Assembly: GCA_020536535.1 (NCBI GenBank) | Contig: JAHLWZ010000816.1 | Location: forward strand, 51,304 to 115,303 | Direction of reading: 5' to 3' | DNA from: Pelomyxa schiedti | Lineage: Eukaryota; Protista; Evosea | Length of the DNA: 64,000 nt | In this document: one piece after another, positions 359 to 42,704 of the stretch | How the letters are laid out: each line of letters opens with the position of its first letter | Numbering within the stretch: position 1 is the stretch's first letter | The notes under the pieces: generated by a model | The model's input: only the letters and a program-made list of their open reading frames with translations | What the model was told of the DNA's origin: nothing | The model's database searches: none | Position numbers and translations under genes: made by a program

Positions 359-615
359 TTTTCTTTCCCTTGTTTGATGGACGCGACTTCGCGGAATCAG
401 GGGCGTAAGGGACCCACCCCCAAGGTGTTTGTTGGGTTTTTTTGGCGACTGGGATCTCGCCACAGGATGCCTCCTCGGATGCTGGAAAGAACACCACGAA
501 AGGACCAGGCATTTCAGAATGTTCCCTCCACCAGTACAGTTTCTGCTCCATTGATGGGGAAAATGTGTGGTTCCCAAAAATGGTGGTATTGTTTTGGTAT
601 TATTTGTACATAGAA

Positions 616-2037
616 TTATAGTCTGACTCTTATCCTTATGAACAAGGTGTCGTCTACTACATATGACTCCATCTGCGCTTTTGTCATGAACTTAAACCAG
701 CCGTAGAAGTCATCACTCGATTTTCTAGCAAGACTCCTTTTCACTTGATCAGCAAAGGCTTCATCTGTTATGATCTCCAGGGTATCCACTGTAGACCCAA
801 CTGTCACAGTGACAACCTAAAGGCAGAAGCGTTAGTATTAATTGGGCATTGTGTGACTCATGCCAAATTAGATAGAGGTAGTCCTGATGAAGGGAAATGT
901 TGAGGCCGTATCCCAAAGAATAATGCCAAGTGGCCGGCACCTGCTAAAGTCTGTCCGGCAAGGCAGGCTTTCATCTCAAATGCTACGCCTCTTGTTGGAA
1001 TAAGTTCTCAAAGTATTAGGAAAGTATTTCTGATACCTGCATACTAAGATTGGGCTAGAAAGTGTGGGTGTTGCACCGTTATTTAGGGCTTGCTCTGCAG
1101 CGCCCAGTTCTGCCCGGTAATTGTTTATTTTCCAGATTGCTTCATCTTGAATTTCCATTAAGCTAGTCCGTAGGCGAACTATTTCGGCTTGTTGCCGGTG
1201 TAGTTGGTCCGATTGCTCTGCCAGTAATCTGGATTGTGAGTCCATTTGTGTGCGTTGCTTATCTACTAATGAGGCGAGGATTGCAAGGTGCTCGAAAATG
1301 GATTCTTGAATGTGAGAACGAGCATTTTTGCGGGTTCCTTTCCATGTGCACCCCGCAACGGAGCACTCAACTACAGCACAATCGCATGATTTTGTGTGCC
1401 TATCTTTATCCTTTCTCAGGACTTCCTCCCCACACATGCACTTGTAGGGTGAATTAGGGCACTCACTGGTATGGGTCTGCATGTTAACCCAAGGCAGTTC
1501 GATGCCACAAGCCTGGCAAGCCACCACTCTAAAAGGGCACTCTCCAGCATGTTTTGCCTCAAGCCTTCTGGCTATAGAAACACCACACCCTTTCCACCTG
1601 CACGGCATTGGGGCATATATGCAGTCATCTTCCACATGCCGATTTAACTTCCCCAATTGCATTATGGCTGTGCAGCCGTCTGATTTGTGTGGGCAGTGTA
1701 CCTCCAGCCGCTCTCTTACACTTAGAAATAGTCTTGCTGGTTTCACAAAGTCTTTGCCAATTGAAACAGGCATGGCTTTACAGCATGGACATTGTGGCTT
1801 CACTTCCAATGAATGTTCCAAACAGCTCCTGCAAAAAACATACGCCTAAAATACGTCGAGGCTTAGTTATTTTGTTTTGTTTGCTTTTTTTTGTGTGTGT
1901 GTTGACAAAACAGACTGGGTGTGGCATATGCATACCTCATTTCCATGCACCAGAGGGTCAATTGCGAAGTCCCGGCATATTGGACATATGTACTCCCGGC
2001 CGGGTTCCTGTACGAAGTGGTATTTGTTTTCGTCCAT
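616..2037 (-). CDS. TRAF-like protein (RING + TRAF zinc fingers + coiled coil + MATH), spliced
   Basis: ATG at 2037 in GCCATG context. RING CPICRDFAIDPLVH..FCRSCLE..CPCC; TRAF zinc fingers (CPHKSDGC..H...C, CRWKGC..H...C, CQAC..H...C); coiled coil; MATH start AIWKINNY; MATH end YGWFKFMTKAQMESYVVDDTLFIRIRV* (ORF 616-807). Confidence 0.85.
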
Positions 2038-2818: not shown

Positions 2819-4606
2819 TCAATTTGAAGCCCAGAGGAAACAAAGGTTGCGTATCACCTCAGAACCTTTTGTAAGTGCAGACAGGGGCACAAACTCTGAT
2901 TTGGCATGGAAGTTCACACCACCTGTAGTTGTGGTGTGTGATGTTAGAAACAAGTCGAGTGAGTAGTGTTGTTTCGCGTTGGTTTGCTTTTGCTTGTGTG
3001 TTAAATTAAGGTTTCTTTACCTGCGAACAGGTTTGGACAAGGAAGCCCCATTTCACAGAGTCTGGCACCGTCTGTTCCGCCTCGTATTTGTGTCACCTTT
3101 GGAGTGATTCCAGCCTGTCTCATGGCCTCCGCGGCACGATCGACAACTGCCGGGTGAGCATCAATGACAGAGCGCATGTTTGTGTACTGCTGAGTATAGG
3201 TAATAGGCGGGATTGTGGCTCTGGGATACCGGATCCGCAGGAATTGTGCTGCTGCATCCATCAGTGCCATCAATTTCTGTGGAATGAGGTTGGATTGGTT
3301 TCGTTTTCACGCGCTCCCTTTTTTTTTGGGTGGCATGGAATACCTTCATTCCGTCCATTGTGAACTCTCGTAGAATGAAGGTTGCTTTTGACTTTCCTGC
3401 GTCACCTTCCAAATTGCACAGGTGAATGAACCCATCCATATCCTGGATTAATTGTTGTTGAGTAAATTGTATGGTTACTGCGATATGGAGAAACCTTGGT
3501 TGTTTCAGGCCTCTTTTCTGCTGGGAGGAGTGTCACAAATTCACTGACAATAATTGCGGCGTTGGCCATTTTCTGGAACGACATTCCTGGGTGCACTTGA
3601 ACACCTGTGCACTCAAAAATAGCTTTGTAGGCATTGAAATTTTCAATTTCCAATTCTCCGATCTCCCCTACAAGCTTTGAGTGGCTAGAAGGAATGTAAC
3701 AATAAGACCTCCATCCACTGTATAGGCATATTCTACTCCAAGTTTGGCAATATCAATATGGTCTGTACCCCCTCCAACTTCCTCGTCAGGTGTGAATATT
3801 ACACGTATCTTTGGTCGTGGCCTGGTAGGTTCAACTTGCATGATATTCTGAATTGCATCCATTATAATTGCCACTCCAGCTTTATCATCAGCACCCAGCT
3901 ATTTTCACAATGAGGGTTGAAGTGTGTCTAACATAACACTACAAGAGTTGTGCCGTCACTGCTTATGATCTTATCTCCCTTGTAACGCTCCAATTGCTCC
4001 CAAGGTATCACAACAGAAGGATCACCAGGAAGTTGGATGGGTTTGCCAGTAGCAACAACCTCTTGTACAATGGGTTTTACTCCAGAACCTACCATAGTGA
4101 GTTATTCCTTAAGAAAGTGACCATAAGGTACTCTTGCAGCAACAAAAATAAAATCAAACACCAAAATACCTGGGGCATCAGGACTGACATCCACGTGAGC
4201 AATGAGGCCTATGGAATGAGTTGACGAGCAATTAGATGGGATTGTCCCAGTGACAATGCAAAATTGATCAACAGCTGCATCTGTGACCCCTATTTGCATA
4301 AACAAAAAGAGCTGGTTATTTAAGACTCAAAAAGGAGCACATTATTCATTTCATAAAGAAAGATAAAAAAAAAAACCGAGGTGAATGAGCTCGTCAACCA
4401 AGATTCTAGCCAAATCAAATTGCCTCATCGTGGAAGGAAACGTAGTGGCGTCATGGGCACTTTTTTGTTTTAGGTTAGGCTTCTATACCCAGTGTGAATT
4501 ATGGTAGTTGAGTATAACTTAGGATGCCACCCATAATTAACGCTTACCTTTGAGTGTCAACCCTGACGTATCGAAGAAACCTGTCTAGCACTGTGTCAGC
4601 GCTCAT
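2819..4606 (-). CDS. pepT: Peptidase T (M20B tripeptide aminopeptidase), multi-exon
   Basis: Exons give MSADTVLDRFLRYVRVDTQS, FPSTMRQFDLARILVDEL, IGLIAHVDVSPD, IRVIFTPDEEVGGG, AYTVDGG, ENFNAYKA, VHPG, RPETT, IRGGTDGARLCEMGLPCPNLFAG and NFHAKSEFV, all hallmark PepT motifs, split by GT-AG introns. Confidence 0.93.
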
Positions 4607-7432: not shown

Positions 7433-8984
7433 TTAATGTTCTATTTTTGGCCAGTGATCAGTATATGACAGTGAGGATTGGATGATAGAGAAAATGCCCA
7501 GCAGGACTGTGAAAATTGATACACCGATATATAGAGGCTTTCTTTTCACTCTGGAGGTACCGAAGGCACCAAATGGAATAGCAAGAAGAGCCCCCACAAG
7601 TAGATATGGAACAAGTGCGTAGTACTCGTCAACGTGTCCGTTGAGGCTGTAGGAATGTAAGGCGAAGGTATTTGAAACACAAAAGAACTCACCACTCCTT
7701 TGCGGTGTAGTTTGGCAGTGGCGATTCACTACCAGACACAGGTGGACTTTTTTGTTCGCATTGTATCATAGAGGAAGTGAAATAACATATGGTGCTTACA
7801 CCACACACAATGACCTCAGAGTAAGGAGTGACACCGATAGAGTTGCGCTCTGGTCTGCCGGCCAGCATTTGGCCCGTTACTGCCACAGGGCCAGATCCTC
7901 CACCAGACAGACCCTGTCCTTTGTGTTGATTTTATGGGGTTTAGGTTTCTGACACACCTTATTGAAGCCTGTGATTATGGATATGATAAATATCTTCCAC
8001 CAAGCAAATTTCCATTCTACAAGTGTCGTCACATGAAGAACTTGGAAACGAAGAGCACATACTTGGTTTGAAAACGTACATACAGAAGGTAAATATGCCC
8101 ATAGTGAGAGCAATAATACCAATGTACAACTTAATAACAAAATTGAACTGCTTTGATATACTACCATAGACACTGACTATTTGAGAAATAATCTAATAAG
8201 AGTAAGGAATAAGAACAATGAAAGATTGCTTACAGCGCCGATAGAGCCTATTCCTCCTAAGAACATGATGATACGTACATCATAAGTAAGGTATTTATTG
8301 AGGACAAATCCAGTTTTCTTGTACAGCCATACCCACCAGATCCAGGTGAATTTTGGGGGCTACGTGTAATTGTCAGTACAACGCTATCTAAGGGGAGATC
8401 TTCATCACCTGCTCAATAGTGAACGAATCATCCTCCCGTTCCAAATCGGCATTAGCTGCCGATAGGGAACTCAATTCTATTTCAGAGGCAGGAGGTGGAG
8501 ATGCATGTTCTTTCTCCAGTGACTTGAACACATCAACCATACTGTTATCACCCTCTGCTGCAACAACTACTTCCCCAGAAGCACTGGCACTAGCCGCAAC
8601 AGGGTCAGCCAAAGGATCGGGGTCCTCTGTATTAGTTTCCTTGTTCCGGAACGCTCCCTTCTCTATTTCTGTCTTGCGAAAGATGAAGTTGTTCTTCAGG
8701 AACATGTGAAAGAGCCCGCTGAATATTGACGTGATAAACTCGACCATAAGTAAGCTAATAACCACCTCCTTTCTCTCATATCCATAGGCAAGTAGTACAG
8801 GTGATAATACAGTACCCCAGCCCATACCTTTTAAAAACGTGGGTTAAAGAATAAAATAATAAGAGAAAAACAAATGACCGGAAGAGAGGGGGGGGAAAAT
8901 AACTCTACCGAGCATCGTTTTGAAGAACTGTACGATGAAGGCGGAAATGGGTACAACGAAAAACCACACGTCAACAACAACCAT
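7433..8984 (-). CDS. TauE/SafE (DUF81) sulfite-exporter-family membrane protein, spliced
   Basis: N-terminus MVVVDVWFFVVPISAFIVQFFKTMLG|MGWGTVLSPVLLAYGYERKEVVISLLMVEF fits the TauE G(M/G)GxGxxLxPxL motif; further hydrophobic exons, including YLLVGALLAIPFGAFGT, run to the stop at 7433. Confidence 0.68.
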
Positions 8985-9394
8985 CTCGCAATAGGAGACT
9001 TCGATCTAGAGAAAAGATGGCGAACGGTCAGCGCTGACGAGATCTGACAGATCGCGTGTGCGTGTTGTGGGGGGTTTTGTTTTGTTTTGTTTTGTTTTGT
9101 TTCGTTTCGTTTCGTTCGTGTTTTTATTAAAAGGTCGCTATTCGTCGGTGAATTTGTTTCGCGTTGTTTTTTCGCGGATGGGAGGTGGAAAAAGAGGAGG
9201 CATCTACCTCTGCTTTTTCGAGTGATTTTTCACAGTCTATCCTATCGGAAGCGCTATGAACTACATTACATGGAAGGTTTTCTCACAAGAGTGGTCGGTG
9301 GGTGATGAGGTAACCTGGCTGGCGGTTGCAACAATTGATACTGATACACCAATGCCACAATGCAATTGCACGTACTTATGTGCAACTCGTGGCC

Positions 9395-9817
9395 TTAACC
9401 TTTCAATATGATGAGTTGGCCACGAGGTCTATGCATTGAAGGTTTTGGTTTTGGTTTTGGGAAAGTTCGTCTTGCAATGCCAATGGGAAATACGATTTGC
9501 TGTTTTTCAAGGACTGTGAGGAAGTTTTTCGTTGGGTGTGTGGGTGGAGACACTGGCACTGTGAGCACAGTTTTAATTTCCTCTTTTTTAACGCTTTTTT
9601 GCACCTGTTCGTTCGGAAGGTCAGTTTTTTCCCTTTGCTGGATGTGCGGAAGGAATCGGAAGACACCTTCTCTGCACTGCCTTTGGATAATCCATTTCTG
9701 ATCATTGCCAGATATGAGAAACGGCACTTCAATTGATTTCACTGCTACCTTGAAGAAGTGAGAAAGAGTTTTCGGGATTGCGCTTCTGTACAACTTTTTC
9801 GTGCGGTGAGAACGCAT
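9395..9817 (-). CDS. Possible small hypothetical protein
   Basis: Stop-free frame from ATG 9817 (MRSHRTKKLY...) to TAA 9395; an overlapping alternative frame (9403-9732) is also open, so the structure is unresolved. Confidence 0.3.
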   Translation of the reverse strand: MRSHRTKKLYRSAIPKTLSHFFKVAVKSIEVPFLISGNDQKWIIQRQCREGVFRFLPHIQQREKTDLPNEQVQKSVKKEEIKTVLTVPVSPPTHPTKNFLTVLEKQQIVFPIGIARRTFPKPKPKPSMHRPRGQLIILKG

Positions 9818-10073
9818 CAAGACCCCAAAAAAGCGAAATGCACCGACACCCTCTCGGGTCATTCTCTGTCTCTGCAAGATCCTATGAAATTAAGCGAAGA
9901 AAAGTGGATGAATAAAATAATCAACAGACCGGAACGCGGTCTGGTGTGGGTGCCTTGGCAAAGCAACCTTGGAGCAACAAAAAAATTTAGATGGAGGTGG
10001 TTTGCGTTGTCGAAGACCCGAACCACTGTTTCCTTTTTCATTGGAACCAATGGTATGCCAGAGAGTCCGTTTA

Positions 10074-10165
10074 GGCGCGCTTCCGCTGCGCTACGGGGCT
10101 TTGGTGTTTGTCTCCTTCCTTAGCCCCGGATGGTTTCGATCCACCGACCTCCGCTTTATGAGAGC
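10074..10165 (-). tRNA. Circularly permuted tRNA-Met(CAT), initiator-type: 3' half (10165-10121), 20-nt spacer (10120-10101), 5' half (10100-10074)
   Basis: Minus strand: GCTCTCATAAAGCGGAGGTCGGTGGATCGAAACCATCCGGGGCTA, then AGGAAGGAGACAAACACCAA, then AGCCCCGTAGCGCAGCGGAAGCGCGCC. Rejoined 72-nt cloverleaf: acceptor AGCCCCG/CGGGGCU 7/7; D stem GCGC/GCGC; anticodon stem CCGCU/AGCGG 5/5 with loop CU-CAU-AA; T stem GGUGG/CCAUC with loop AUCGAAA; A1:U72; discriminator A. Confidence 0.85.
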
Positions 10166-10324
10166 TTTTGTCCCCCCCAGCCTAAGGTAACCCCACTGAC
10201 TTCATTGGAGCCTCCTCCTCAAAATCACTACCGCACAAACGAATTGTTTTTCGCTGTTTTAGGTTGTTGAGATGGGATTATGGGTTGGTTGTTGCGTGGA
10301 AACTCAAAGGGCAACACAACAAGC

Positions 10325-11299
10325 TTAGCTGAGGTAGGAAGCTGGAAGTTGTGTTTGTCGTTTTGGTGAGGCCAAGTGGGATTTGAGGGGAGTAGTGGGC
10401 GCATTTGCTGATTGTGTACTAGTTGTAGTAGCTGATGTGGTTGCGGCCGTAGCGGCAGAGCTAGAGGGGGTCGCGGTCGTCGGCGTTGTAGTCAGTGCGC
10501 TGGGATTTGGGTTAAACCACGATGTAATGGGCTTGCTGGCACCAACACCAACATTTTTCATGAAGCACTCCCTGCAGACAGCGATGTACTTGTCGGCTCC
10601 TCCAATGACCTCTATCTCTGTCTCGCTTCCAAGCCTCCTGCTGAACGCAGCATCCTTGTAACAGCACATGCACACTGCTGTGAGCTTGGTTACGCTCTCG
10701 GCAAGTGGAACAAGCTGCAGAATGGAGCCGAAAGGTTTCCTCTGGAAAGTTCCATCCAGCGCCGCAACAACCACCACCTTCCCCTTGTTCGCCATTTTCT
10801 CGCAGAACGGCACAACGTCCAGGAAGAACTGCCCCTCGTCAATCCCAATCACGTCGAAAGTCGAAGCGCTCTCCTCCACCTCGCTAAGAGTGACACAGTC
10901 CACAGCGTCCCACTGCTGGTGGTCGTGCGTGGCGCAGCGCGGCTGGTGCTGGCGCGCGTTGTTGTTTGGCTGAGCGTCGTAGCGCGTGTCGTTGTAGTAC
11001 TTGATGACCACGCACGTCTTCTTTGCGACGGTGTACCTCTTGATCCTCCTCAGCAGCTCCGTGGTCTTCCCGCTGAACATGGGCCCGAGAATCAGCTCGA
11101 TCCAACCGTTGTACGTCATTTCGTCGTCGGAATCGCCGGGCGACGCGACGCGCCGCAGCGACGGGCTTCGCGTCGGCGAGTACGCCACTCGGGAGCTGCT
11201 AGAAGCCGAAGAAGAAGACGACGACGCGACCGGCATTGGTTTCGTTGGTGACGACATCGCCGCTACCGCTGCTTGTGCATCGCCTCCCGTAGTAGTCAT
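10325..11299 (-). CDS. TK1: Thymidine kinase (type II / TK1 family), intronless
   Basis: [18 protein letters not shown] (P-loop), [44 protein letters not shown]...YIAVCREC zinc site; low-complexity termini. Confidence 0.97.
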
Positions 11300-11564: not shown

Positions 11565-14500
11565 ATGGCATCAAACTCACCATCGTTGTCTGATTCACAC
11601 GGTCTGACCCCGCAGAAATGGGTCCCTGACACTGCCTCCGATGTGTGCCTTTTGTGCGAGGCTGCGTTCACTGTTACGAGGAGGAGGCATCACTGCAGGG
11701 CGTGTGGGAAGTTGTTTTGTGCTCAGTGCTCAATAAACAGGGTGAAGTTACCTCCAGGTTTGCTCTCCTTCTTTCTTTTGCAACCTTACCTTACTCCCTT
11801 TAGAATTCGGGTATGGTGACTCGATAGAGAGGGTTTGTTTTGAATGCTTCAGTAAATTGTCAGTAATTACTGATGAAGAAACCAGTATTTTTCCCATACT
11901 TTCAACATTTCAAACTAAGCGTTCCACAGAGCAATCAGAGCATCTCATTGTTGGAGAGAGCATTGCTGACTATCTGTATAGAGGCCTGGTAGTACTATAT
12001 GACGACCAAAAGCGACTGGAGCCAATTCTAATCATTGCAAAATATCGTATTTTCTTTTTCAAACGCCCTCCTCCAGGAGCCAAGAAAATCCGATTAGAGG
12101 TAACAAAACAATTAAATTGGGTTCAACTAAGTGAGGTCTAGTCCATACGGAACATTCATTTGTACAATATTTTGTCTCTATCTCATGTTGAAAACTCCCC
12201 CAAGGTTATAAATAGTCACGCAAAAAAAGTGAAAACTCAACTTCTAACTTTCCAAAGCGACTCGAAATTGCCTTTGTTGAAGCTAAGAGAGAGAAGCATA
12301 TCATTATTGCCAGTAGTGAAGTACTTCTGCTCTGTCATCCATTCCTTCTCAACCATCCTCTGTCCAGATACCCAATATTGTACTCAACATAAGAAAGGCA
12401 TACCGTGCTATAATGCCAAAAGGCATACCAGATGATCGAGAAGTCATTAACATAGATTTACCAAATGCAATGTACTTTAATCAAGTATAAAAAGGACATT
12501 CTTACATCATTCCTAGGCTTCTCCCAGTCCCACCCCTTGGTATGAATGAGACCACTTGGAAATATTCAAACACCAAATAAAAAAAGATGTCGGGCTTGCT
12601 GGAGGCTTCACAGACACTTACAAGGCTCAGTGCAACTATCTGGGTGTTGAAGTTTCGCCTGAAGTTCTTCTTTGTAAGTAAATAGCAGATATCACTCCCA
12701 TTAATTCTCTTTAGATATAGAAGATGTAACCATAAGAGAAAACTCCTTTGATTTTGTAATGAATGATATTCCAGGTACCCACTAGCTTCCTCCCCTTCTC
12801 TATGACACTTTTGTAAGGAGTGGAAGGAAAAAATAAACTCTTCTGGGATATGTTGCCAGTGACAACTGCTTTATTCCAAAATAACTTTTTCAAGTCTGTT
12901 TCTATTGACGCCGTTGATAGAAAAGTAACTCATTCAAATACCGATTGAATTTGTTCTCAGTTCCTATAGGACGCCCCTGAAATGATATCAGGGATAATGA
13001 CATTTAACAAAACCATTACACGGCTAAGCATTACCAACATGCAATCGGGAACAGCGGGCTTAGATGACCTTGGCTTGGCCCTTAAGAAGAATACAGATAA
13101 TGCACTACAAGTCCTTGACCTTTCAGGTAAAACCTGTGCACCATAGCATTTGTGAATCCAACTGTCTAAGGATGTAGATTGACTGGTATTTGTGTTGAGA
13201 ACCTTGCCATTGCAATTGCTTCCTTTAAGCACGGGTTAACCGCCTTGTATCTTGCCAATTGCAGGTTTTTATTCACCCTTCTGATGGTTTTTGTTAACAC
13301 TTGTCTTAAAGACTGAGGGAAAAGCAGTCAGTATTCCTTCTTAAGCAAGGCCTCTTGAAAAACCTTGGTTGTACATCATGCATCGAGGAATTAGATCTTT
13401 CCTATAACCGATTGGACGCTGAGGGCTCACAGGCACTGAACCAGTGGTTCACTGATATGGTCTTTTCCTCTTTTCTCTCTTTTTTTTCCCCTTACCTTAA
13501 AAAAAAACAGGGTCCTTCTTCACACCTGAGGAAACTTCTGCTTTCTGGGACCCAAATGGTTGCAGGTCCAGTGCTGCGCAGTGTCAGCAAACTTCCAGTT
13601 CTTCACACTCTTATCCTTTCCCACAACAAGTTTGATCCTCTTTCTTGTCAGTGTGTGTGCTCCGCATTGTCGGCACCACCAACAGTCTCTATAATAACCA
13701 CTGTTTCCCTGTCCAACTGCAACTTTGCACCAGAGGTGTTTGTTGCTTTGGCCTCTTCATTACTTGATTCCAAAGCCAGAGTTGAAGACAGTGCCACAAA
13801 CCTCTGTGTGAGACTGAACTTCTCTAGTAATAATTTGGATGACAGCGCCATAGTTCCCTTTTCTGAAGTTGTGAACCTCTCTCCTAATTTTAGTCTTATA
13901 TTTAGTTTAGTTTCTCAACAAAACTCCTACGTGCAACTTTGAATTAGATTTATCTGGGAACTGTTTTACTGACAGGGGGCTGGTACAGTTCTTCACAGCC
14001 CTAAAGACTAATTCGAAAGTCACCTCCTTGATTCTCAACAACATGAATTTCAGGGTAGGGTTTCCTTAAAGTTTTCCTGATGATTAAATCCCAGCAGGTC
14101 ACACAAGCTAATGGAGAAAGACAAGTTGTCACTGCGTTACAAGACTTGGCGGACAACACTCCGTCATTATCGTGTCTTTCACTTTCAAGGTCTTTTGACC
14201 ACATAAAACCTTTCTCTCCTAATGAATAGTAGTGGCTGGTCCGGCCCGTTTATGGCTATGTTCCTGGAGAGTATGGCGAACAATACCATTTTAAAGGAGG
14301 TTTCTACCACATAAATAAAAGAAACAACCCAACCCTTCATTTATAGTTGGAAATCTCCAACAACGTACTTGGAGAACTTGGGGGAAGAGCCCTTGGGCAC
14401 TTCTTGCGCTGGAATAAGTCCTTGGTGATGCTGACAGCCGACAATGTGCAATTATCTCCTTCCGCTTGGCATTCAGTGAGTTGCGGTATGAATCCAACTT

Positions 14501-26327: not shown

Positions 26328-27407
26328 ATGAGTGGAGATTACGACGAGGAGCAATGGAGCGTCGTGTCGCGGGTGCAGGACATGCTCGCGGCCACCAAGT
26401 GCGAGCCCCGCCACGCCCACGACTGCGTCGCCCTGGCCTGCCACTTCGCCATGCTCCAGCGCGGCTTCTCCTTCGCTGGCTTCGGCGACTCCCCCGCCCC
26501 CGCCCCCGCCGCCTCTTCGCCCGACGACGGCGGTGCCGCCTCCTCCTCCCCCGCCTCCCCCGCCGCCCCCGCGGACCCGCCGCCTGGGTGGAACTGCGAC
26601 GCGGACGTGTACTCGTTCAAGTACACGCACGCGAGGGGGGCGCCCGGCCGCACGTTCCTGGTCAAGTCGCTGGTCCTCGGGCCCGTTCTCGCGATGCACG
26701 CAATGGATCTCGCTGCCCCCGACCGCGTGCTCTCTGTCGACGTCATGGTGAGTTCTTACGTTGGATCTGGATCTGGGGCTACTGCTTCTGGCGCCGCCTC
26801 TGGATCTGATGACACTGGGAAGAACAAGGGCGCGGCCCCTACGGTGTTCAAAGATTTGGATGGATTGATCATCAAGTTCCTTTCGTCTGTTGCTGATAAG
26901 CTCGTCGGCGCTTCTCCCATAATCCCAACTGGGCCGCGCAGGGACAAGGAGCCGGGCCTCACTGAGCGCAGGGATGGTGGTGATGACGACGAGACTGGAT
27001 TATGGGACGACTGGACCCGTGGTGCTACTGGAGGTGGAGGATTTGGATTTGGTGCTGTGAATCACAGGCCTACCCCGTTTATTTCTGGTGATGGTGATGC
27101 ACACCCCATATTCGAGAGCCCATTCTCTCTCATTGATCCAGATAGGCGCCGCCACCCTCTTACCTCACCAGAGTATGGAGGCAACTTGATTGGCCCCAGG
27201 CACCCGGGATTTGGTGGTGGAGTTGGTGGGATTGGAAGGCCGCCTCCTGGGCTTGGTGTGCCCCCTGGTGCCCGCTATGATCCATTTGGACCCCCTGGTG
27301 TATATCCCACTCCCCCGCAATCAGGCAGAGGCCGCGGCACCGGTTCTGCGTTTGGTCCCGACCCTGACCACTTGCCACCCCCTGGTTATGACGACATGTA
27401 TATGTAG
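26328..27407 (+). CDS. PSMF1: Proteasome inhibitor PI31
   Basis: FP domain (DCVALACHFAMLQRGF, PPGWNCDADVYSFKY, TFLVKSLVLG) and C-terminal IGPRHPGF..PPGARYDPFGP..PDPDHLPPPGYDDMYM. Confidence 0.92.
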   Translation: MSGDYDEEQWSVVSRVQDMLAATKCEPRHAHDCVALACHFAMLQRGFSFAGFGDSPAPAPAASSPDDGGAASSSPASPAAPADPPPGWNCDADVYSFKYTHARGAPGRTFLVKSLVLGPVLAMHAMDLAAPDRVLSVDVMVSSYVGSGSGATASGAASGSDDTGKNKGAAPTVFKDLDGLIIKFLSSVADKLVGASPIIPTGPRRDKEPGLTERRDGGDDDETGLWDDWTRGATGGGGFGFGAVNHRPTPFISGDGDAHPIFESPFSLIDPDRRRHPLTSPEYGGNLIGPRHPGFGGGVGGIGRPPPGLGVPPGARYDPFGPPGVYPTPPQSGRGRGTGSAFGPDPDHLPPPGYDDMYM

Positions 27408-28430: not shown

Positions 28431-29801
28431 GTGGGTGGGACAGGAGAAGCGGGCGAAGGGGCGGCAGTGCTCACTCCCGCAATTCCCCTGCCGCCTCTCT
28501 CCTCTGTGGTGATATCCTCGCACCCACTACAGGCCGAGGATGCGGACGAGGCGCAGGAGCAGGAGGAGGAGGAGGAGGAGCCCGGGGCCGCCGCCCCGCA
28601 CAGCGACCCCAGCGGCAGTGGTGGGGGTGGTGGCCCCGCAGCCTCGGGAAGGGGGGCGGCGCCTGCCGCGAGCGCGGTACCTGCGGTTGTCGTGGCGGGC
28701 GATGGGGACGACGATGTCATGGACGTGGTGTGGCAGAGGCTGTCGGAAATAGGCCTGGTTACGCGGCACTTCCCTGCTCCACAGCGTATGGTGTTATCGT
28801 TACTGAGATGGTGCCAATTGTTATTGTTGTTGTCGTTGATTAATAAATAATATCTCGTGTGTGTGTGGGGGTGGGGATTGGCTTTGTCACCAGAAATGCG
28901 GGTTAATAATATCTCGCTCGTTCCATTGAATTTGCTGATGCAAATGAACCAGTGTTTACCACCAAGGCCGTAGAGTGCCCATGCAATATTATTAAAGACA
29001 GCATTACAGTGTCATCAGAGACAGGTGATATGGGACATGTTGTAGATCAGGTATGGGTACGGGTTCTTATTTGAACTGAGTCCCTGTACAAAGATATCTT
29101 TTTCATTTGACTGCCTTATCCCTTGCACCGTTCGCCTGATCAAAGATCCACAAGGCAGCACAGAGACTGTAGGAGAGCAAGTTTTTTCCGAGTACGGATA
29201 TGGATTGCAATACAAAGCGTCTATTGCTTCAAGCACGTTCCATGACTCGGAAGGATGTGTCTTAGAGATTCAACTTTCATGCAATCATGAGGCCTGTGCA
29301 CCAGCCACGGCAGCTACACCTGAGTGCAACAGCAAAGAGGCTTGCGCCATCATCGTGAGCAAACTCGCAGAAGAACAAAATGGCTCCAATTCATCAACAT
29401 CCCTACGCCTTGGAGAACCAACCACTCCAGACACTAGTCCTCACTTCACTCACTTCACCCAGAGCACCACAGTTAACATTTTCCACTATTCCTCACAGCC
29501 ACCCAAAATCCGCGTAGTGAAACAAACTCTACTCCTTGGGACTCCCTCAAAAGAGCACCCATCACCAACAGCACCACCACCAGAACTCCGGAAATTCTGT
29601 TTGTATGACATCTATGGCACTGGTGGATCAGACACAGACCCCCTTGATTGTGTCATTTGCATGACTGAGCCCCGGCAAGTTGTTATGCTGCCTTGCAGAC
29701 ACATGTCAGTCTGCCCCCAGTGTGCCAATACATTGCAACAACCATCTTCCCATTGTTTACTATGCCGTGCACCTGTAAATGCTATACTGTCTGTTGAATA
29801 G
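28431..29801 (+). CDS. MGRN1/LOG2-like RING E3 ubiquitin ligase (start uncertain)
   Basis: VVKQTLLLG...LYDIYG motif followed by CVICMTEPRQVVMLPCRHMSVCPQCANTLQQPSSHCLLCRAPV. Confidence 0.8.
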
Positions 29802-40209: not shown

Positions 40210-42704
40210 TTACCCATCCAAAGGGTAACCAGGACCAGTGTAGTTTGTTGGGTAGTAGTATGCCTGCTCCTCCAAAGTGAGCCAGGGCATCCATACATTG
40301 TTGAAATTTGCTGGATTGGAGCGTTCATCAACTTCGGTGTAAGGTGTCCAGGGGATGACCTTGAGAATTTCGTTAGCCTATTAGCACCCCAATCTGCAAG
40401 GAATTTTTACTGCATGCTGGCGATAGAAATCAAGCCTTTGCATTAATTCCTCTACTTTATCAGGCATGCTGTCTGCAAGGTTCTGAGGAAATTAGAGGGA
40501 TTATTTTTTGGTTTTGTTGAAGTAAACAAAACTGCTGAGGATATTAACCTTGTGCTCACAGGGATCGTCCTTCAAGTTGAATAGGCACATGGAAGTATTC
40601 ATGCAAGCATAGGGAAGCAGTGGGGGCCTTGGACAGTCCACACTGAAGGTGGCATAGTCCCACTCCAAGTCTGGTGGTGGGAACCACCCTATCTCATTGA
40701 ACAACAACTCGTTGTATAACAGTTTGTAGTCACCAGCTCTAATGGCATTTACCTATAAGTGCGATTACTAATCTGCATTTTCTCTGAATGCCGGTACATA
40801 CGCGTTCCCTACCGCCGGGGACATGAACAGCATGAATTATTTCGGTTCTGGGAGATTCTGCATCAGAGGCAATAGTATCCCAGAGATCAATTCCATCACC
40901 AGGAAGATAAGGGACTTCGTTATCACCTAAACCGATTGTAAAATTTGAATCTCTCAAAAGAAAAGGAAGAGCACACCAATCGTTAGTTCATGGTGAGCAT
41001 TTGGGTCTCCTGTGGCACCACGCTTTGCTGCGGTCAACAAGCTTGGCATCCAGTCCACCACGTGGATCAATTGATTTGATGTGTATCCCGTTTTAATCAA
41101 GCCATTTCCTCTGACAAAACCTACTGCCCTCACTCCCCCTTCAAAGTACGTATCCTTTAAAGAATTGGTTAGTTGGCAGAGATAACAGCAAAGAAAGTGT
41201 ACCTTCCCTCCCCTAAGCGGGAAATTTGAACCAGCATTGTGATTGAACATTTGGATTGGGGCTCCGCCGTTATCAGTAGAAAATATAAATAGAGTGTCAT
41301 CATATATTCCCGTACTCTGTAAGAATGATATCATATCTCCGACTGTAAAATCAAGAGCGGAAACTGCTCCTGCCACACTCTTCCTCATTGCCCGAGTTGT
41401 GCAACTACCCGTGCGTGTACGTTGCCGCGCACCGCAAGTCTCGTTTTCTGGTGAAATTGTATCGTCGAATGCGTGAATGTAGGAATCTGGAGCTTGTGGG
41501 GCGTATTTATCATTTGTATTGTGCACAGTCTAGAATTTAATTCAGTTAACTGGATACAATCTCAATAAAAAGAACCTGATGAGAAAGAAACATAAAGAAA
41601 GGTTGCTCCGGTCTGGATTCAAGATGCTCTTGAATCCACTGCTTGGCGACATCGTTAAACATGAAAGTCCTAATAAGATAATAAGATACTGATATAGCGC
41701 AGTTTCACGTACCCATAGTAGTTGTCCTTGCCATAAACTGGAGTTTCAGGAGATCCTCCTACGCCCTCAAAGAGGTCCAAAGCTTGTATGCCATAGATTG
41801 CGTCGTCTATATGGATTAGAATTAGTGGCTAGGGTAACGATTGAATTTCATTTATCAATACAGCATAAACTACACACTCCAGTGGTCGAAGTAATCTTCA
41901 TCAGGTCCCAGTAAACCAAAGCTTCGGTCAAAGCCACGTAGTGAAGGCTCATATTCAGGGGATTTGGATCCAAGGTGCCTTTACGCGAAAATGAACAGAG
42001 TCGTTCGAGGTGATACATTCTTACCATTTACCAACAAGGTAAGTTGAATAATTATAAAAGGATTTGAGATGAGCTGGAAGTAATGTGTATGTTAGGTTCA
42101 AGCCTGCTGCATTGTCACCAGTGTTGTAGGGCCAATCACAGCCAGTGTGTATCTGGAACAACATAATTCAATGGGAATGTGAGTGTCTTTTCGCATAAAT
42201 TACTTTTCTTGACAAGGAGTGTATCATTACAAAAGCAAACCTGACTTCTGGCAGATAGAAGTGAGGTCCTTGTTGGAGAACACACTGCATTCGTGTAACT
42301 TAAACATGTCAGAGAAGCGGATGAAAGGAAGTAATATAGTAACTATTGGTCCAAAACGACTGTCCCTGGGTCTTTTGCAAGTGCATCAATGTTTGGTGTC
42401 GGTATCTGAGGTGAACCATGGAAACTCACATCATTCCATCTGACAGGGAAAAAAAAAATTTTAAAAGAAGAAACTAATAACCGTGGAAACACAATATTAT
42501 TATATTATCGCGGCTCACCTCAAAAAACACAAAACGCCAAAACCACAATAAACTGCCGCTTGAAAGTGGATGGACAGAAAAAAAAAAGATAGTTTACCCA
42601 AGATCATCAATGAGCATAAAAAGGATGTGGGGCGCCTTGGCCCGAGAATACACCGCCAAACCAAACACAACCACAATGATCCACCACGAAACAGAAGCCC
42701 GCAT
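40210..42704 (-). CDS. Arylsulfatase B-like Cys-type sulfatase with signal peptide, multi-exon
   Basis: MRASVSWWIIVVVFGLAVYSRAKAPHILFMLIDDLG|WNDVSFHGSPQIPTPNIDALA; active site CSPTR (CxPxR); FSTDNGG; GSNFPLRGGK; FEGGVRAVGFV; LIHVVDWMPSL; CLFNLKDDPCEH. Confidence 0.92.

Follow-up and report, generated by a model that had tools for sequence, protein, structure and literature searches.

The stretch of Pelomyxa schiedti DNA analysed here, a 64,000-nucleotide (nt) part of contig JAHLWZ010000816.1 that we refer to as the window, harbors a circularly permuted transfer RNA (tRNA) gene for methionine. Its two parts occupy the minus strand in an order opposite to that of the tRNA, so that 10165-10121, a spacer and 10100-10074, read in this direction, tile one tRNA-Met(CAU) exactly. 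The part that comes first (10121-10165, 45 nt, GCTCTCATAAAGCGGAGGTCGGTGGATCGAAACCATCCGGGGCTA) supplies nt 29-73 of the tRNA, i.e., the lower anticodon stem, the anticodon loop CUCAUAA, the variable loop AGGUC, the T arm, the 3' strand of the acceptor stem and the discriminator A73, after which CCA is not encoded. Within it lie the anticodon CAT (nt 34-36, 10158-10160) and the B-box equivalent GGATCGAAACC (nt 52-62, 10132-10142), which holds a T loop of the initiator type (A54, A60). An intervening sequence of 20 nt without a T run (10101-10120, AGGAAGGAGACAAACACCAA) leads from A73 to A1. The second part (10074-10100, AGCCCCGTAGCGCAGCGGAAGCGCGCC) supplies nt 1-28 in only 27 nt, because nt 17 is absent, and comprises the 5' strand of the acceptor stem, U8 and A9, the D arm, G26, C27 and C28, with the A-box equivalent (nt 8-19) at 10083-10093.

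Joined in tRNA order, the two parts are called by ARAGORN as a tRNA-Met(cat) of 72 nt, and the minimum-energy fold of the product in RNAfold is the cloverleaf itself (-30.6 kcal/mol). The acceptor stem has 7/7 Watson-Crick pairs, the D stem closes at 4/4, the anticodon stem at 5/5 with two of its pairs across the junction, and the T stem at 5/5 including G50-U64. The conserved positions U8, A14, G15:C48, G18G19, A21, G26, U33, G53:C61, U55, C56 and A58 are kept, and A1:U72, A54 and A60 are also present. Across the junction (marked by a slash) the product reads ...GCGCGCC/GCUCUCAU..., and 28/29 is the sole tiling, because a one-base displacement of the junction to either side disrupts the anticodon stem. 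As a control for chance, we collected from both strands of the window every acceptor-like pair of 7 bp with a spacer of at most 120 nt (~5,800) and tested each possible join. Among ~2.3 million joins of 71-77 nt, tRNA calls came from the permuted locus alone; ~4.8 million joins of 80-91 nt gave three extra calls elsewhere in the window, of class II length, which were rejected as false positives (poor cloverleafs, rich in G-U pairs and without a T loop). This uniqueness among ~7 million permuted joins indicates that the arrangement is not a product of chance. ARAGORN finds no tRNA gene in the whole window, and no Rfam model matches it at gathering score. Searching the window for a second copy of the region with blastn-short returned random 10-13-mers alone, and Tandem Repeats Finder detected no tandem array at the locus. 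For comparison, Mastigamoeba has 219 tRNA genes, and if P. schiedti is alike its tRNA genes would occur at roughly one per 250 kb. The anatomy of a permuted tRNA-Met is thus confirmed as real, unusual and far beyond chance. An earlier sequence-only reading of the same DNA had described this layout with its coordinates, its 20-nt spacer and its exact tiling, as well as four closed stems with one G-U pair in the T stem, and had expected standard scanners to miss the locus; re-reading the minus strand and running the two programs bore out all of these points.

Much of the joined tRNA is of the initiator type. The CAU anticodon, the A1:U72 pair and the T-loop residues A54 and A60 are features of the eukaryotic cytoplasmic initiator, and the acceptor stem, the D arm (GCGC-AGCGGAA-GCGC), the variable loop (AGGUC) and the T arm (GGUGG-AUCGAAA-CCAUC) match those of intact initiator tRNA-Met (iMet) genes in environmental contigs. 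Three consecutive G:C pairs in the anticodon stem, G29-G31:C39-C41, are a defining feature of initiator tRNAs, and these are missing from the stem CCGCU/AGCGG, which has G29:C41, C30:G40 and U31:A39 in their place. For comparison, GGG:CCC is carried by intact iMet genes in contig L009 and in a giant-virus contig, L033 (2509-2580), as well as by the Micromonas-type permuted genes discussed below, and a second colinear iMet of L033 (2731-2802) has G29:C41, G30:C40 and C31:G39. The initiator type proposed in the sequence-only reading holds for the acceptor stem, the D arm, the variable loop, the T arm and the anticodon; the anticodon stem, whose missing pairs that reading had overlooked, is not initiator-like. 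The tRNA would be either an unusual Pelomyxa initiator or the product of a copy that is not the working initiator.

The locus lies within the 619-bp intergenic spacer between a thymidine kinase gene (10325-11080; Pfam TK, 5e-65; best database match the thymidine kinase of P. schiedti) and the next gene downstream, which encodes a TauE-family membrane protein (7433-9705). The two genes and the locus share the minus strand, with nt 29 following the thymidine kinase stop codon at a distance of 160 nt. The sequence that leads up to nt 29 contains a T4 run (10221-10224, 56 nt upstream), the upstream copy of a 12-nt direct repeat (10201-10212, GGCTCCAATGAA) and a leader (10166-10200) that ends in GGGGGGGACAAAA. 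Past nt 28, the trailer (10026-10073) starts with TAAACGGA and includes the downstream copy of the repeat (10037-10048, GGTTCCAATGAA), which is 11/12 identical to the upstream copy. The first run of at least four T past the locus is a T7 run at 9985-9979, 88 nt after nt 28 and at the position given in the sequence-only reading; it is a possible RNA polymerase III (Pol III) terminator. Further open reading frames (ORFs) in the window match a PI31 proteasome regulator, TRAF/Sina zinc fingers, a RING finger, leucine-rich repeats and a sulfatase fragment (26328-27407, 976-1821, 29205-29801, 13355-13942, 40954-41526). No retroelement or transposase was found among the 20 window ORFs scanned, and the gene content, as far as these matches tell, is ordinary nuclear. 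The host, which had been thought amoebozoan-like from its sequence, is indeed so, P. schiedti being an archamoeba within Amoebozoa; over 20,756 bases the window is 100% identical to the contig of assembly GCA_020536535.1.

Permuted tRNA genes in other genomes and in metagenomes

Some 35 permuted tRNA genes have been described. Their hosts are a few red and green microalgae (Cyanidioschyzon merolae, Ostreococcus, Micromonas and Bathycoccus), the nucleomorph of the chlorarachniophyte Bigelowiella, one alga virus (the prasinovirus BpV1) and one archaeon, Thermofilum pendens (Soma 2007; Maruyama 2010; Chan 2011; reviewed in PMC3978253). What defines these genes is a bulge-helix-bulge (BHB) motif formed at the junction by leader and trailer. 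It is cut by the splicing endonuclease, and ligation of the ends yields a circle, which is subsequently opened at the acceptor end by RNase P and tRNase Z (PMC3978253). We found no report of a permuted tRNA gene in Amoebozoa in the literature covered, and the P. schiedti genome paper is silent on tRNAs (PMC8887013). The Pelomyxa gene resembles its algal and archaeal counterparts in having the 3' part upstream of the 5' part on one strand, in not encoding CCA and in its 20-nt, terminator-free spacer (the known range is 1-74 nt). It is also a tRNA-Met, and initiator tRNA-Met is among the permuted species of every known lineage, carried independently. It differs from them in the lack of a BHB, in its 28/29 junction, in having no upstream TATA-like element, in a T run that is 88 nt away and in its host, a non-photosynthetic amoebozoan. 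What is new here is hence the junction position, the missing BHB and the lineage, whereas the topology is that of known permuted genes.

Searches for relatives used patterns of different stringency. A specific pattern for the 3' part had no matches in metagenomes, and a 3'-part pattern had none in prokaryote genomes. A generic pattern, an iMet B box followed by an iMet D arm, matched 31 metagenome contigs, which comprise Micromonas-type permuted iMet genes, one new gene of the 37/38 type and tight tRNA clusters, none of them Pelomyxa-like; in viral contigs the same pattern matched a normal tRNA cluster alone. The Micromonas-type permuted iMet, which has its junction at 37/38 and a spacer of 11-12 nt, was seen in 13 marine metagenome contigs (L002, L004, L005, L007, L008, L010, L013, L015, L020, L024, L026, L028 and L031). 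The new gene, on contig L025 (Ga0123519_10069656, ~1297-1348, minus strand), is a permuted tRNA-Met(CAT) that has G1:C72 and an AUCGAAA T loop; it breaks at 37/38 and has a clean BHB there. Both the Micromonas-type genes (L002, L008) and the L025 gene share the T-loop and D-arm motifs of the Pelomyxa locus, in the same permuted order. However, the Micromonas-type BHB has the central helix CCCA/TGGG with a 5-bp exon helix and that of L025 has TTCA/TGAA, whereas Pelomyxa has none; with junctions at 37/38 they keep an intact anticodon stem that serves as the exon helix, whereas the Pelomyxa break falls within the stem; and the Micromonas type retains GGG:CCC in that stem, unlike Pelomyxa.

The closest parallel to the break point came from L033 (IMGVR_UViG_GVMAG-M-3300006805-8_000001), a giant-virus metagenome contig found by scanning viral contigs for a variable loop followed by a T arm. 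It carries a permuted tRNA-Met(CAT) in which 2863-2906 corresponds to nt 30-73 and 2908-2935 to nt 1-29, with a 1-nt spacer between them; the T loop is of the initiator type, the cloverleaf is perfect on joining, and GGG:CCC is lacking. Two ordinary colinear iMet genes stand beside it. A scan for permuted genes revealed a second one on the same contig, a tRNA-Ile(AAT) at ~2620-2693 with a 3-nt spacer and, again, a perfect cloverleaf; its anticodon loop is CCAAUAA, with C rather than U at position 33. We found no published report of these two genes. Both break at 28/29 or 29/30 (the assignment is ambiguous by one T), as in Pelomyxa, neither has a BHB, and the break point they share with Pelomyxa is unlike that of all 34 tabulated cases of permuted tRNAs (PMC3978253). 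Read as 28/29, the 5' parts of all three genes end in G26-C27-S28 and all three trailers start with UAA. Each of the two viral genes sits in the middle of a copy of a repeated inter-tRNA spacer module (...TAGTTTCATACAGCA, a T run, ...AAACTAGCAAAAA), whose outer arms are paired. Copies of this module lie at 2590-2725, 2828-2965, 3045-3109 and ~190-245, two of them holding the permuted tRNAs and two empty, and the arm pairs show compensatory changes (UUAGUUCU/AGAACUAG and UGUUUUCA/UGAAAACA, with UAGUUUCA/UGAAACUA in an empty module). Two further observations concern the same tRNA cluster. It includes a GIY-YIG/NUMOD homing-endonuclease-like ORF (430-1218, minus strand), and at ~231-300 there is a tRNA-Arg(TCT)-like body with D, anticodon and T arms in order, without an adjacent 3' acceptor strand and not called by ARAGORN; an AT-rich complementary 7-mer lies ~59 nt upstream of it, and the body may be another disrupted tRNA or a chance resemblance.

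L033 is therefore like Pelomyxa in its break point, in the absence of a BHB, in a permuted tRNA-Met without GGG:CCC and in a leader-trailer helix near the junction. It is unlike Pelomyxa in its spacers (1 and 3 nt versus 20) and in its setting, an AT-rich viral sequence within a dense tRNA cluster; moreover, its helix shows compensatory changes in a repeated module, whereas the Pelomyxa helix is marginal (p ~0.05), and the two have no sequence relationship past generic tRNA conservation. Since three independent permuted tRNAs have one unusual break point, its position would be set by a mechanism. If that mechanism acts in processing, function would be implied; it could equally act when such genes form, with which dead copies are compatible. 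The parallel hints at a distinct class of permuted tRNAs.

Signals at the junction and possible traces in the flanks

Weighing against an expressed gene, the reading to which we turn in the next section, are the anticodon-stem pairs described above, the restriction to one locus with no orthologous locus, and the results on joining and transcription set out in this paragraph and the next. Written as an explicit rule, the BHB geometry requires leader positions -6 to -3 to pair with the 4 nt that precede the final two of the 5' part. In the positive controls L002, L008 and L025 this rule gives 4/4 pairs at the correct junction; in Pelomyxa the corresponding strands, CGCG and ACAA, give 0/4 central-helix pairs. 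No other BHB register yields a valid tRNA in 286 nt of precursor, the few ARAGORN calls in other registers being junk "tRNA-Val" products without flanking helices. The BHB was thus tested and is absent, so the defining feature of the known permuted-tRNA family is lacking, and the algal-type maturation via a circular intermediate that the sequence-only reading had suggested finds no support in the sequence. Spliceosomal back-splicing was considered and rejected, as the junction ends are CC/TA and AA/GC, not GT/AG. Apart from YrlA, which is taken up below, the flanks match no Rfam family at E<=10, ribozymes included, and none matches anywhere in the window at E<=1. Pairing of leader and trailer flush with the break is limited to A(-1):U(+1) and was dismissed as a helix. 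Further out, leader GCUGGGGGG can pair with trailer CUCUCUGGC (-17.6 kcal/mol, 7-8 nt from the break), a helix of marginal significance (p ~0.05-0.07) and correspondingly weak support. The 28/29 junction, which lies inside the anticodon stem, is outside the described positions 15/16, 20/21, 37/38, 50/51 and 59/60. We also observe a seven-G run just upstream of nt 29, within 10166-10178; because this run can pair either with trailer CUCUCUGGC or with a CUCUC stretch in the anticodon stem and loop, the precursor has competing folds.

As for transcription, a permuted gene of the known family would have a TATA-like promoter within ~50 bp upstream and a T stretch downstream; here the 60 nt before the locus hold no TATA-like element, and the nearest downstream T run is 88 nt away. 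The B box precedes the A box, which is the wrong order for TFIIIC (promoter logic in PMC3978253). From the upstream T4 to the downstream T7 there are 235 nt without a run of at least four T, an interval that would allow a single transcript and is not statistically remarkable. Taken together, the promoter picture drawn from these motifs appears unfavourable or unclear.

The flanks may preserve traces of how the locus arose. The leader has no homology to nt 1-28 (leader against spacer plus nt 1-28, p 0.3-0.86). The 48-nt trailer aligns from its first base, colinearly, with nt 36-73 and the spacer (34/45 identical, with nt 29-35 deleted), and may be the decayed remains of a colinear copy of this segment. 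The empirical p of this homology is ~0.001 against all 48-mers of the window under three scoring schemes and 0.02-0.14 at other lengths; with this range the alignment is statistically weak, which adds to the points against an expressed gene, and its end overlaps the 12-nt direct repeat. If the homology is real, the locus would have originated when a 3' part was placed before a complete gene whose own 3' part then decayed, and a decayed colinear copy beside 92 untouched nt would speak for selection on the permuted pair. The direct repeats, 164 nt apart, bracket a 152-nt unit that holds the permuted tRNA, like a target-site duplication, and we estimate that ~0.01 such repeats would occur by chance within 60 nt on each side of the locus. 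Similarity beyond the 12-nt repeat is not significant once the repeat is excluded, and no further decayed units of significance were found upstream or downstream of the locus. For the repeat itself, a target-site duplication, a remnant of some duplication and a chance match are all conceivable, and the two readings of the flanks, as a decayed colinear copy and as a target-site duplication, compete with each other.

Working gene, relic, tRNA-like element or artefact

We tentatively favour, with confidence somewhat short of even, the reading that the locus is an expressed permuted tRNA-Met(CAU) gene of the initiator type whose product is matured by a route that does not use a BHB or is used in nicked form. 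Included in this reading is that the locus is a real gene of the P. schiedti nuclear genome and single copy within the window. We count in its favour the flawless cloverleaf with its conserved positions, the exact tiling and the uniqueness among permuted joins; the spacer length within the known range and the interval free of T runs; the break point shared with L033, the possible decay of the trailer and the leader-trailer helix; and the independent occurrence of permuted iMet genes in the known algal and archaeal lineages.

From the gene anatomy alone we infer that the tRNA would be transcribed, cleaved, joined and aminoacylated, by a route that can be outlined as follows. One RNA would span the 3' part, the spacer and the 5' part. 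It might begin between the T4 run at 10221-10224 and nt 29 and end at the T7 run, the T4 run requiring that a Pol III transcript start downstream of it, or it might be RNA polymerase II read-through from the thymidine kinase gene. In the cloverleaf formed by this RNA, the acceptor stem would be closed off by the spacer, and C28 and G29 would be left unconnected in the anticodon stem. Once RNase P and tRNase Z had excised the spacer and CCA had been added, leader and trailer would be removed at 28/29, with the break either sealed or tolerated as a nick. This last step would take place without a BHB or the algal splicing-endonuclease route, and the leader-trailer helix near the junction may serve as its handle. 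A nick at 28/29 would be tolerable because the 3' strand of the anticodon stem is continuous. Two-piece transfer-messenger RNA and fragmented ribosomal RNAs from permuted genes show that base-paired pieces can work unligated, and a tRNA nicked at 28/29 could in principle do so as well, although these are different RNAs from tRNA; we know of no two-piece cytoplasmic tRNA. A more specific proposal, that the Pelomyxa locus yields a working tRNA-Met by a non-BHB route (another nuclease with a ligase, or a nicked two-piece molecule) and that the L033 pair follows the same route, we regard as unlikely.

The locus might instead be a dead by-product of a recent rearrangement, with the working iMet supplied by ordinary genes elsewhere, which we consider doubtful but nearly as likely as the favoured reading. 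Such a relic could have formed from a unit-length iMet copy with ~20 nt of flank, via a circular or tandem intermediate opened in the anticodon stem, or from a local tandem duplication that lost its outer parts; a unit-length intermediate would account for the exact tiling and a young age for the perfect stems. Both of the published origin models for permuted genes, reverse transcription of circular or permuted pre-tRNAs and tandem duplication, fit this history, as do an anticodon stem that is non-canonical for an initiator, a leader without trace of nt 1-28, an 11/12 direct repeat that brackets the 152-nt unit like a target-site duplication, and the absence of any known signal for joining 28 to 29, be it BHB, GT/AG or ribozyme. 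A break defined by the mechanism of formation would also explain the shared 28-30 junction in L033 without function. What speaks against a dead copy is the trailer: if it is a decayed 3' part (p ~0.001 at 48 nt), neutral decay cannot have spared the other 92 nt. Moreover, no second copy or tandem array is detectable in the window, two independent deletions would meet exactly at 28/29 in ~1 in 70 cases, the element has neither a poly-A tail nor terminal inverted repeats, and the L033 examples are regular members of a tRNA cluster within a conserved, covarying stem.

Two further explanations were considered. The locus could be a tRNA-like signal for processing or 3'-end formation, or a scaffold, that remains unjoined in a longer transcript such as the 3' region of the thymidine kinase gene, where either RNase P and tRNase Z or a tRNA-binding protein would recognise its acceptor, T-arm and D-arm module. 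A location on the thymidine kinase strand, with 160 nt between the stop codon and the locus, would suit this role, and precursor folds retain the T arm and the closed acceptor hairpin. The topology is, in addition, comparable to that of the tRNA-like domain of the bacterial Y RNA YrlA (RF02553), the sole Rfam model that aligns in the window (26.1 bits; E=0.0027 locally and 0.25 window-wide; model positions 23-87 of 114), in which the T arm, a closed acceptor-like hairpin and the D arm follow in the same order. However, the score falls far short of the 69 bits needed for gathering, the match leaves out the Ro-binding stem, and YrlA is bacterial and has no anticodon arm. A full anticodon arm with CAU and an exact tiling would not be needed in such an element, leader and trailer are unpaired next to the break, and the fold z-scores are modest (-1.5 to -2.0); we hold this explanation to be quite improbable. 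An artefact of assembly or amplification, i.e., a chimera or a collapsed tandem array, has to be weighed because the assembly was made in SPAdes single-cell mode, with k up to 121, from phi29-amplified DNA of seven single cells (PMC8887013), and multiple displacement amplification makes chimeric molecules. It would, however, need three precise junctions within 100 nt and a novel 20-nt spacer, in a consensus from seven cells plus Nanopore reads and within ordinary intergenic DNA that is single copy and bounded by two intact genes. That three chimeric joints should all be exact is implausible, and a collapsed 92-nt array should not give a single unit between unique flanks, because the final k of 121 exceeds 92; we therefore give an artefact very little credence.

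Even as a dead copy, the locus would be a rare natural snapshot of the origin of a permuted RNA gene, and the same break in two viral permuted tRNAs suggests that its position is not accidental. If the favoured reading of an expressed gene holds and the Pelomyxa and L033 tRNAs do share a route, they would make up a second, mechanistically distinct class of permuted tRNAs, the first in Amoebozoa. A functional gene would extend the phenomenon to a new eukaryotic supergroup and would point to an unknown RNA cleavage and joining activity, and it would mean that essential genes of protists can escape standard tRNA annotation.

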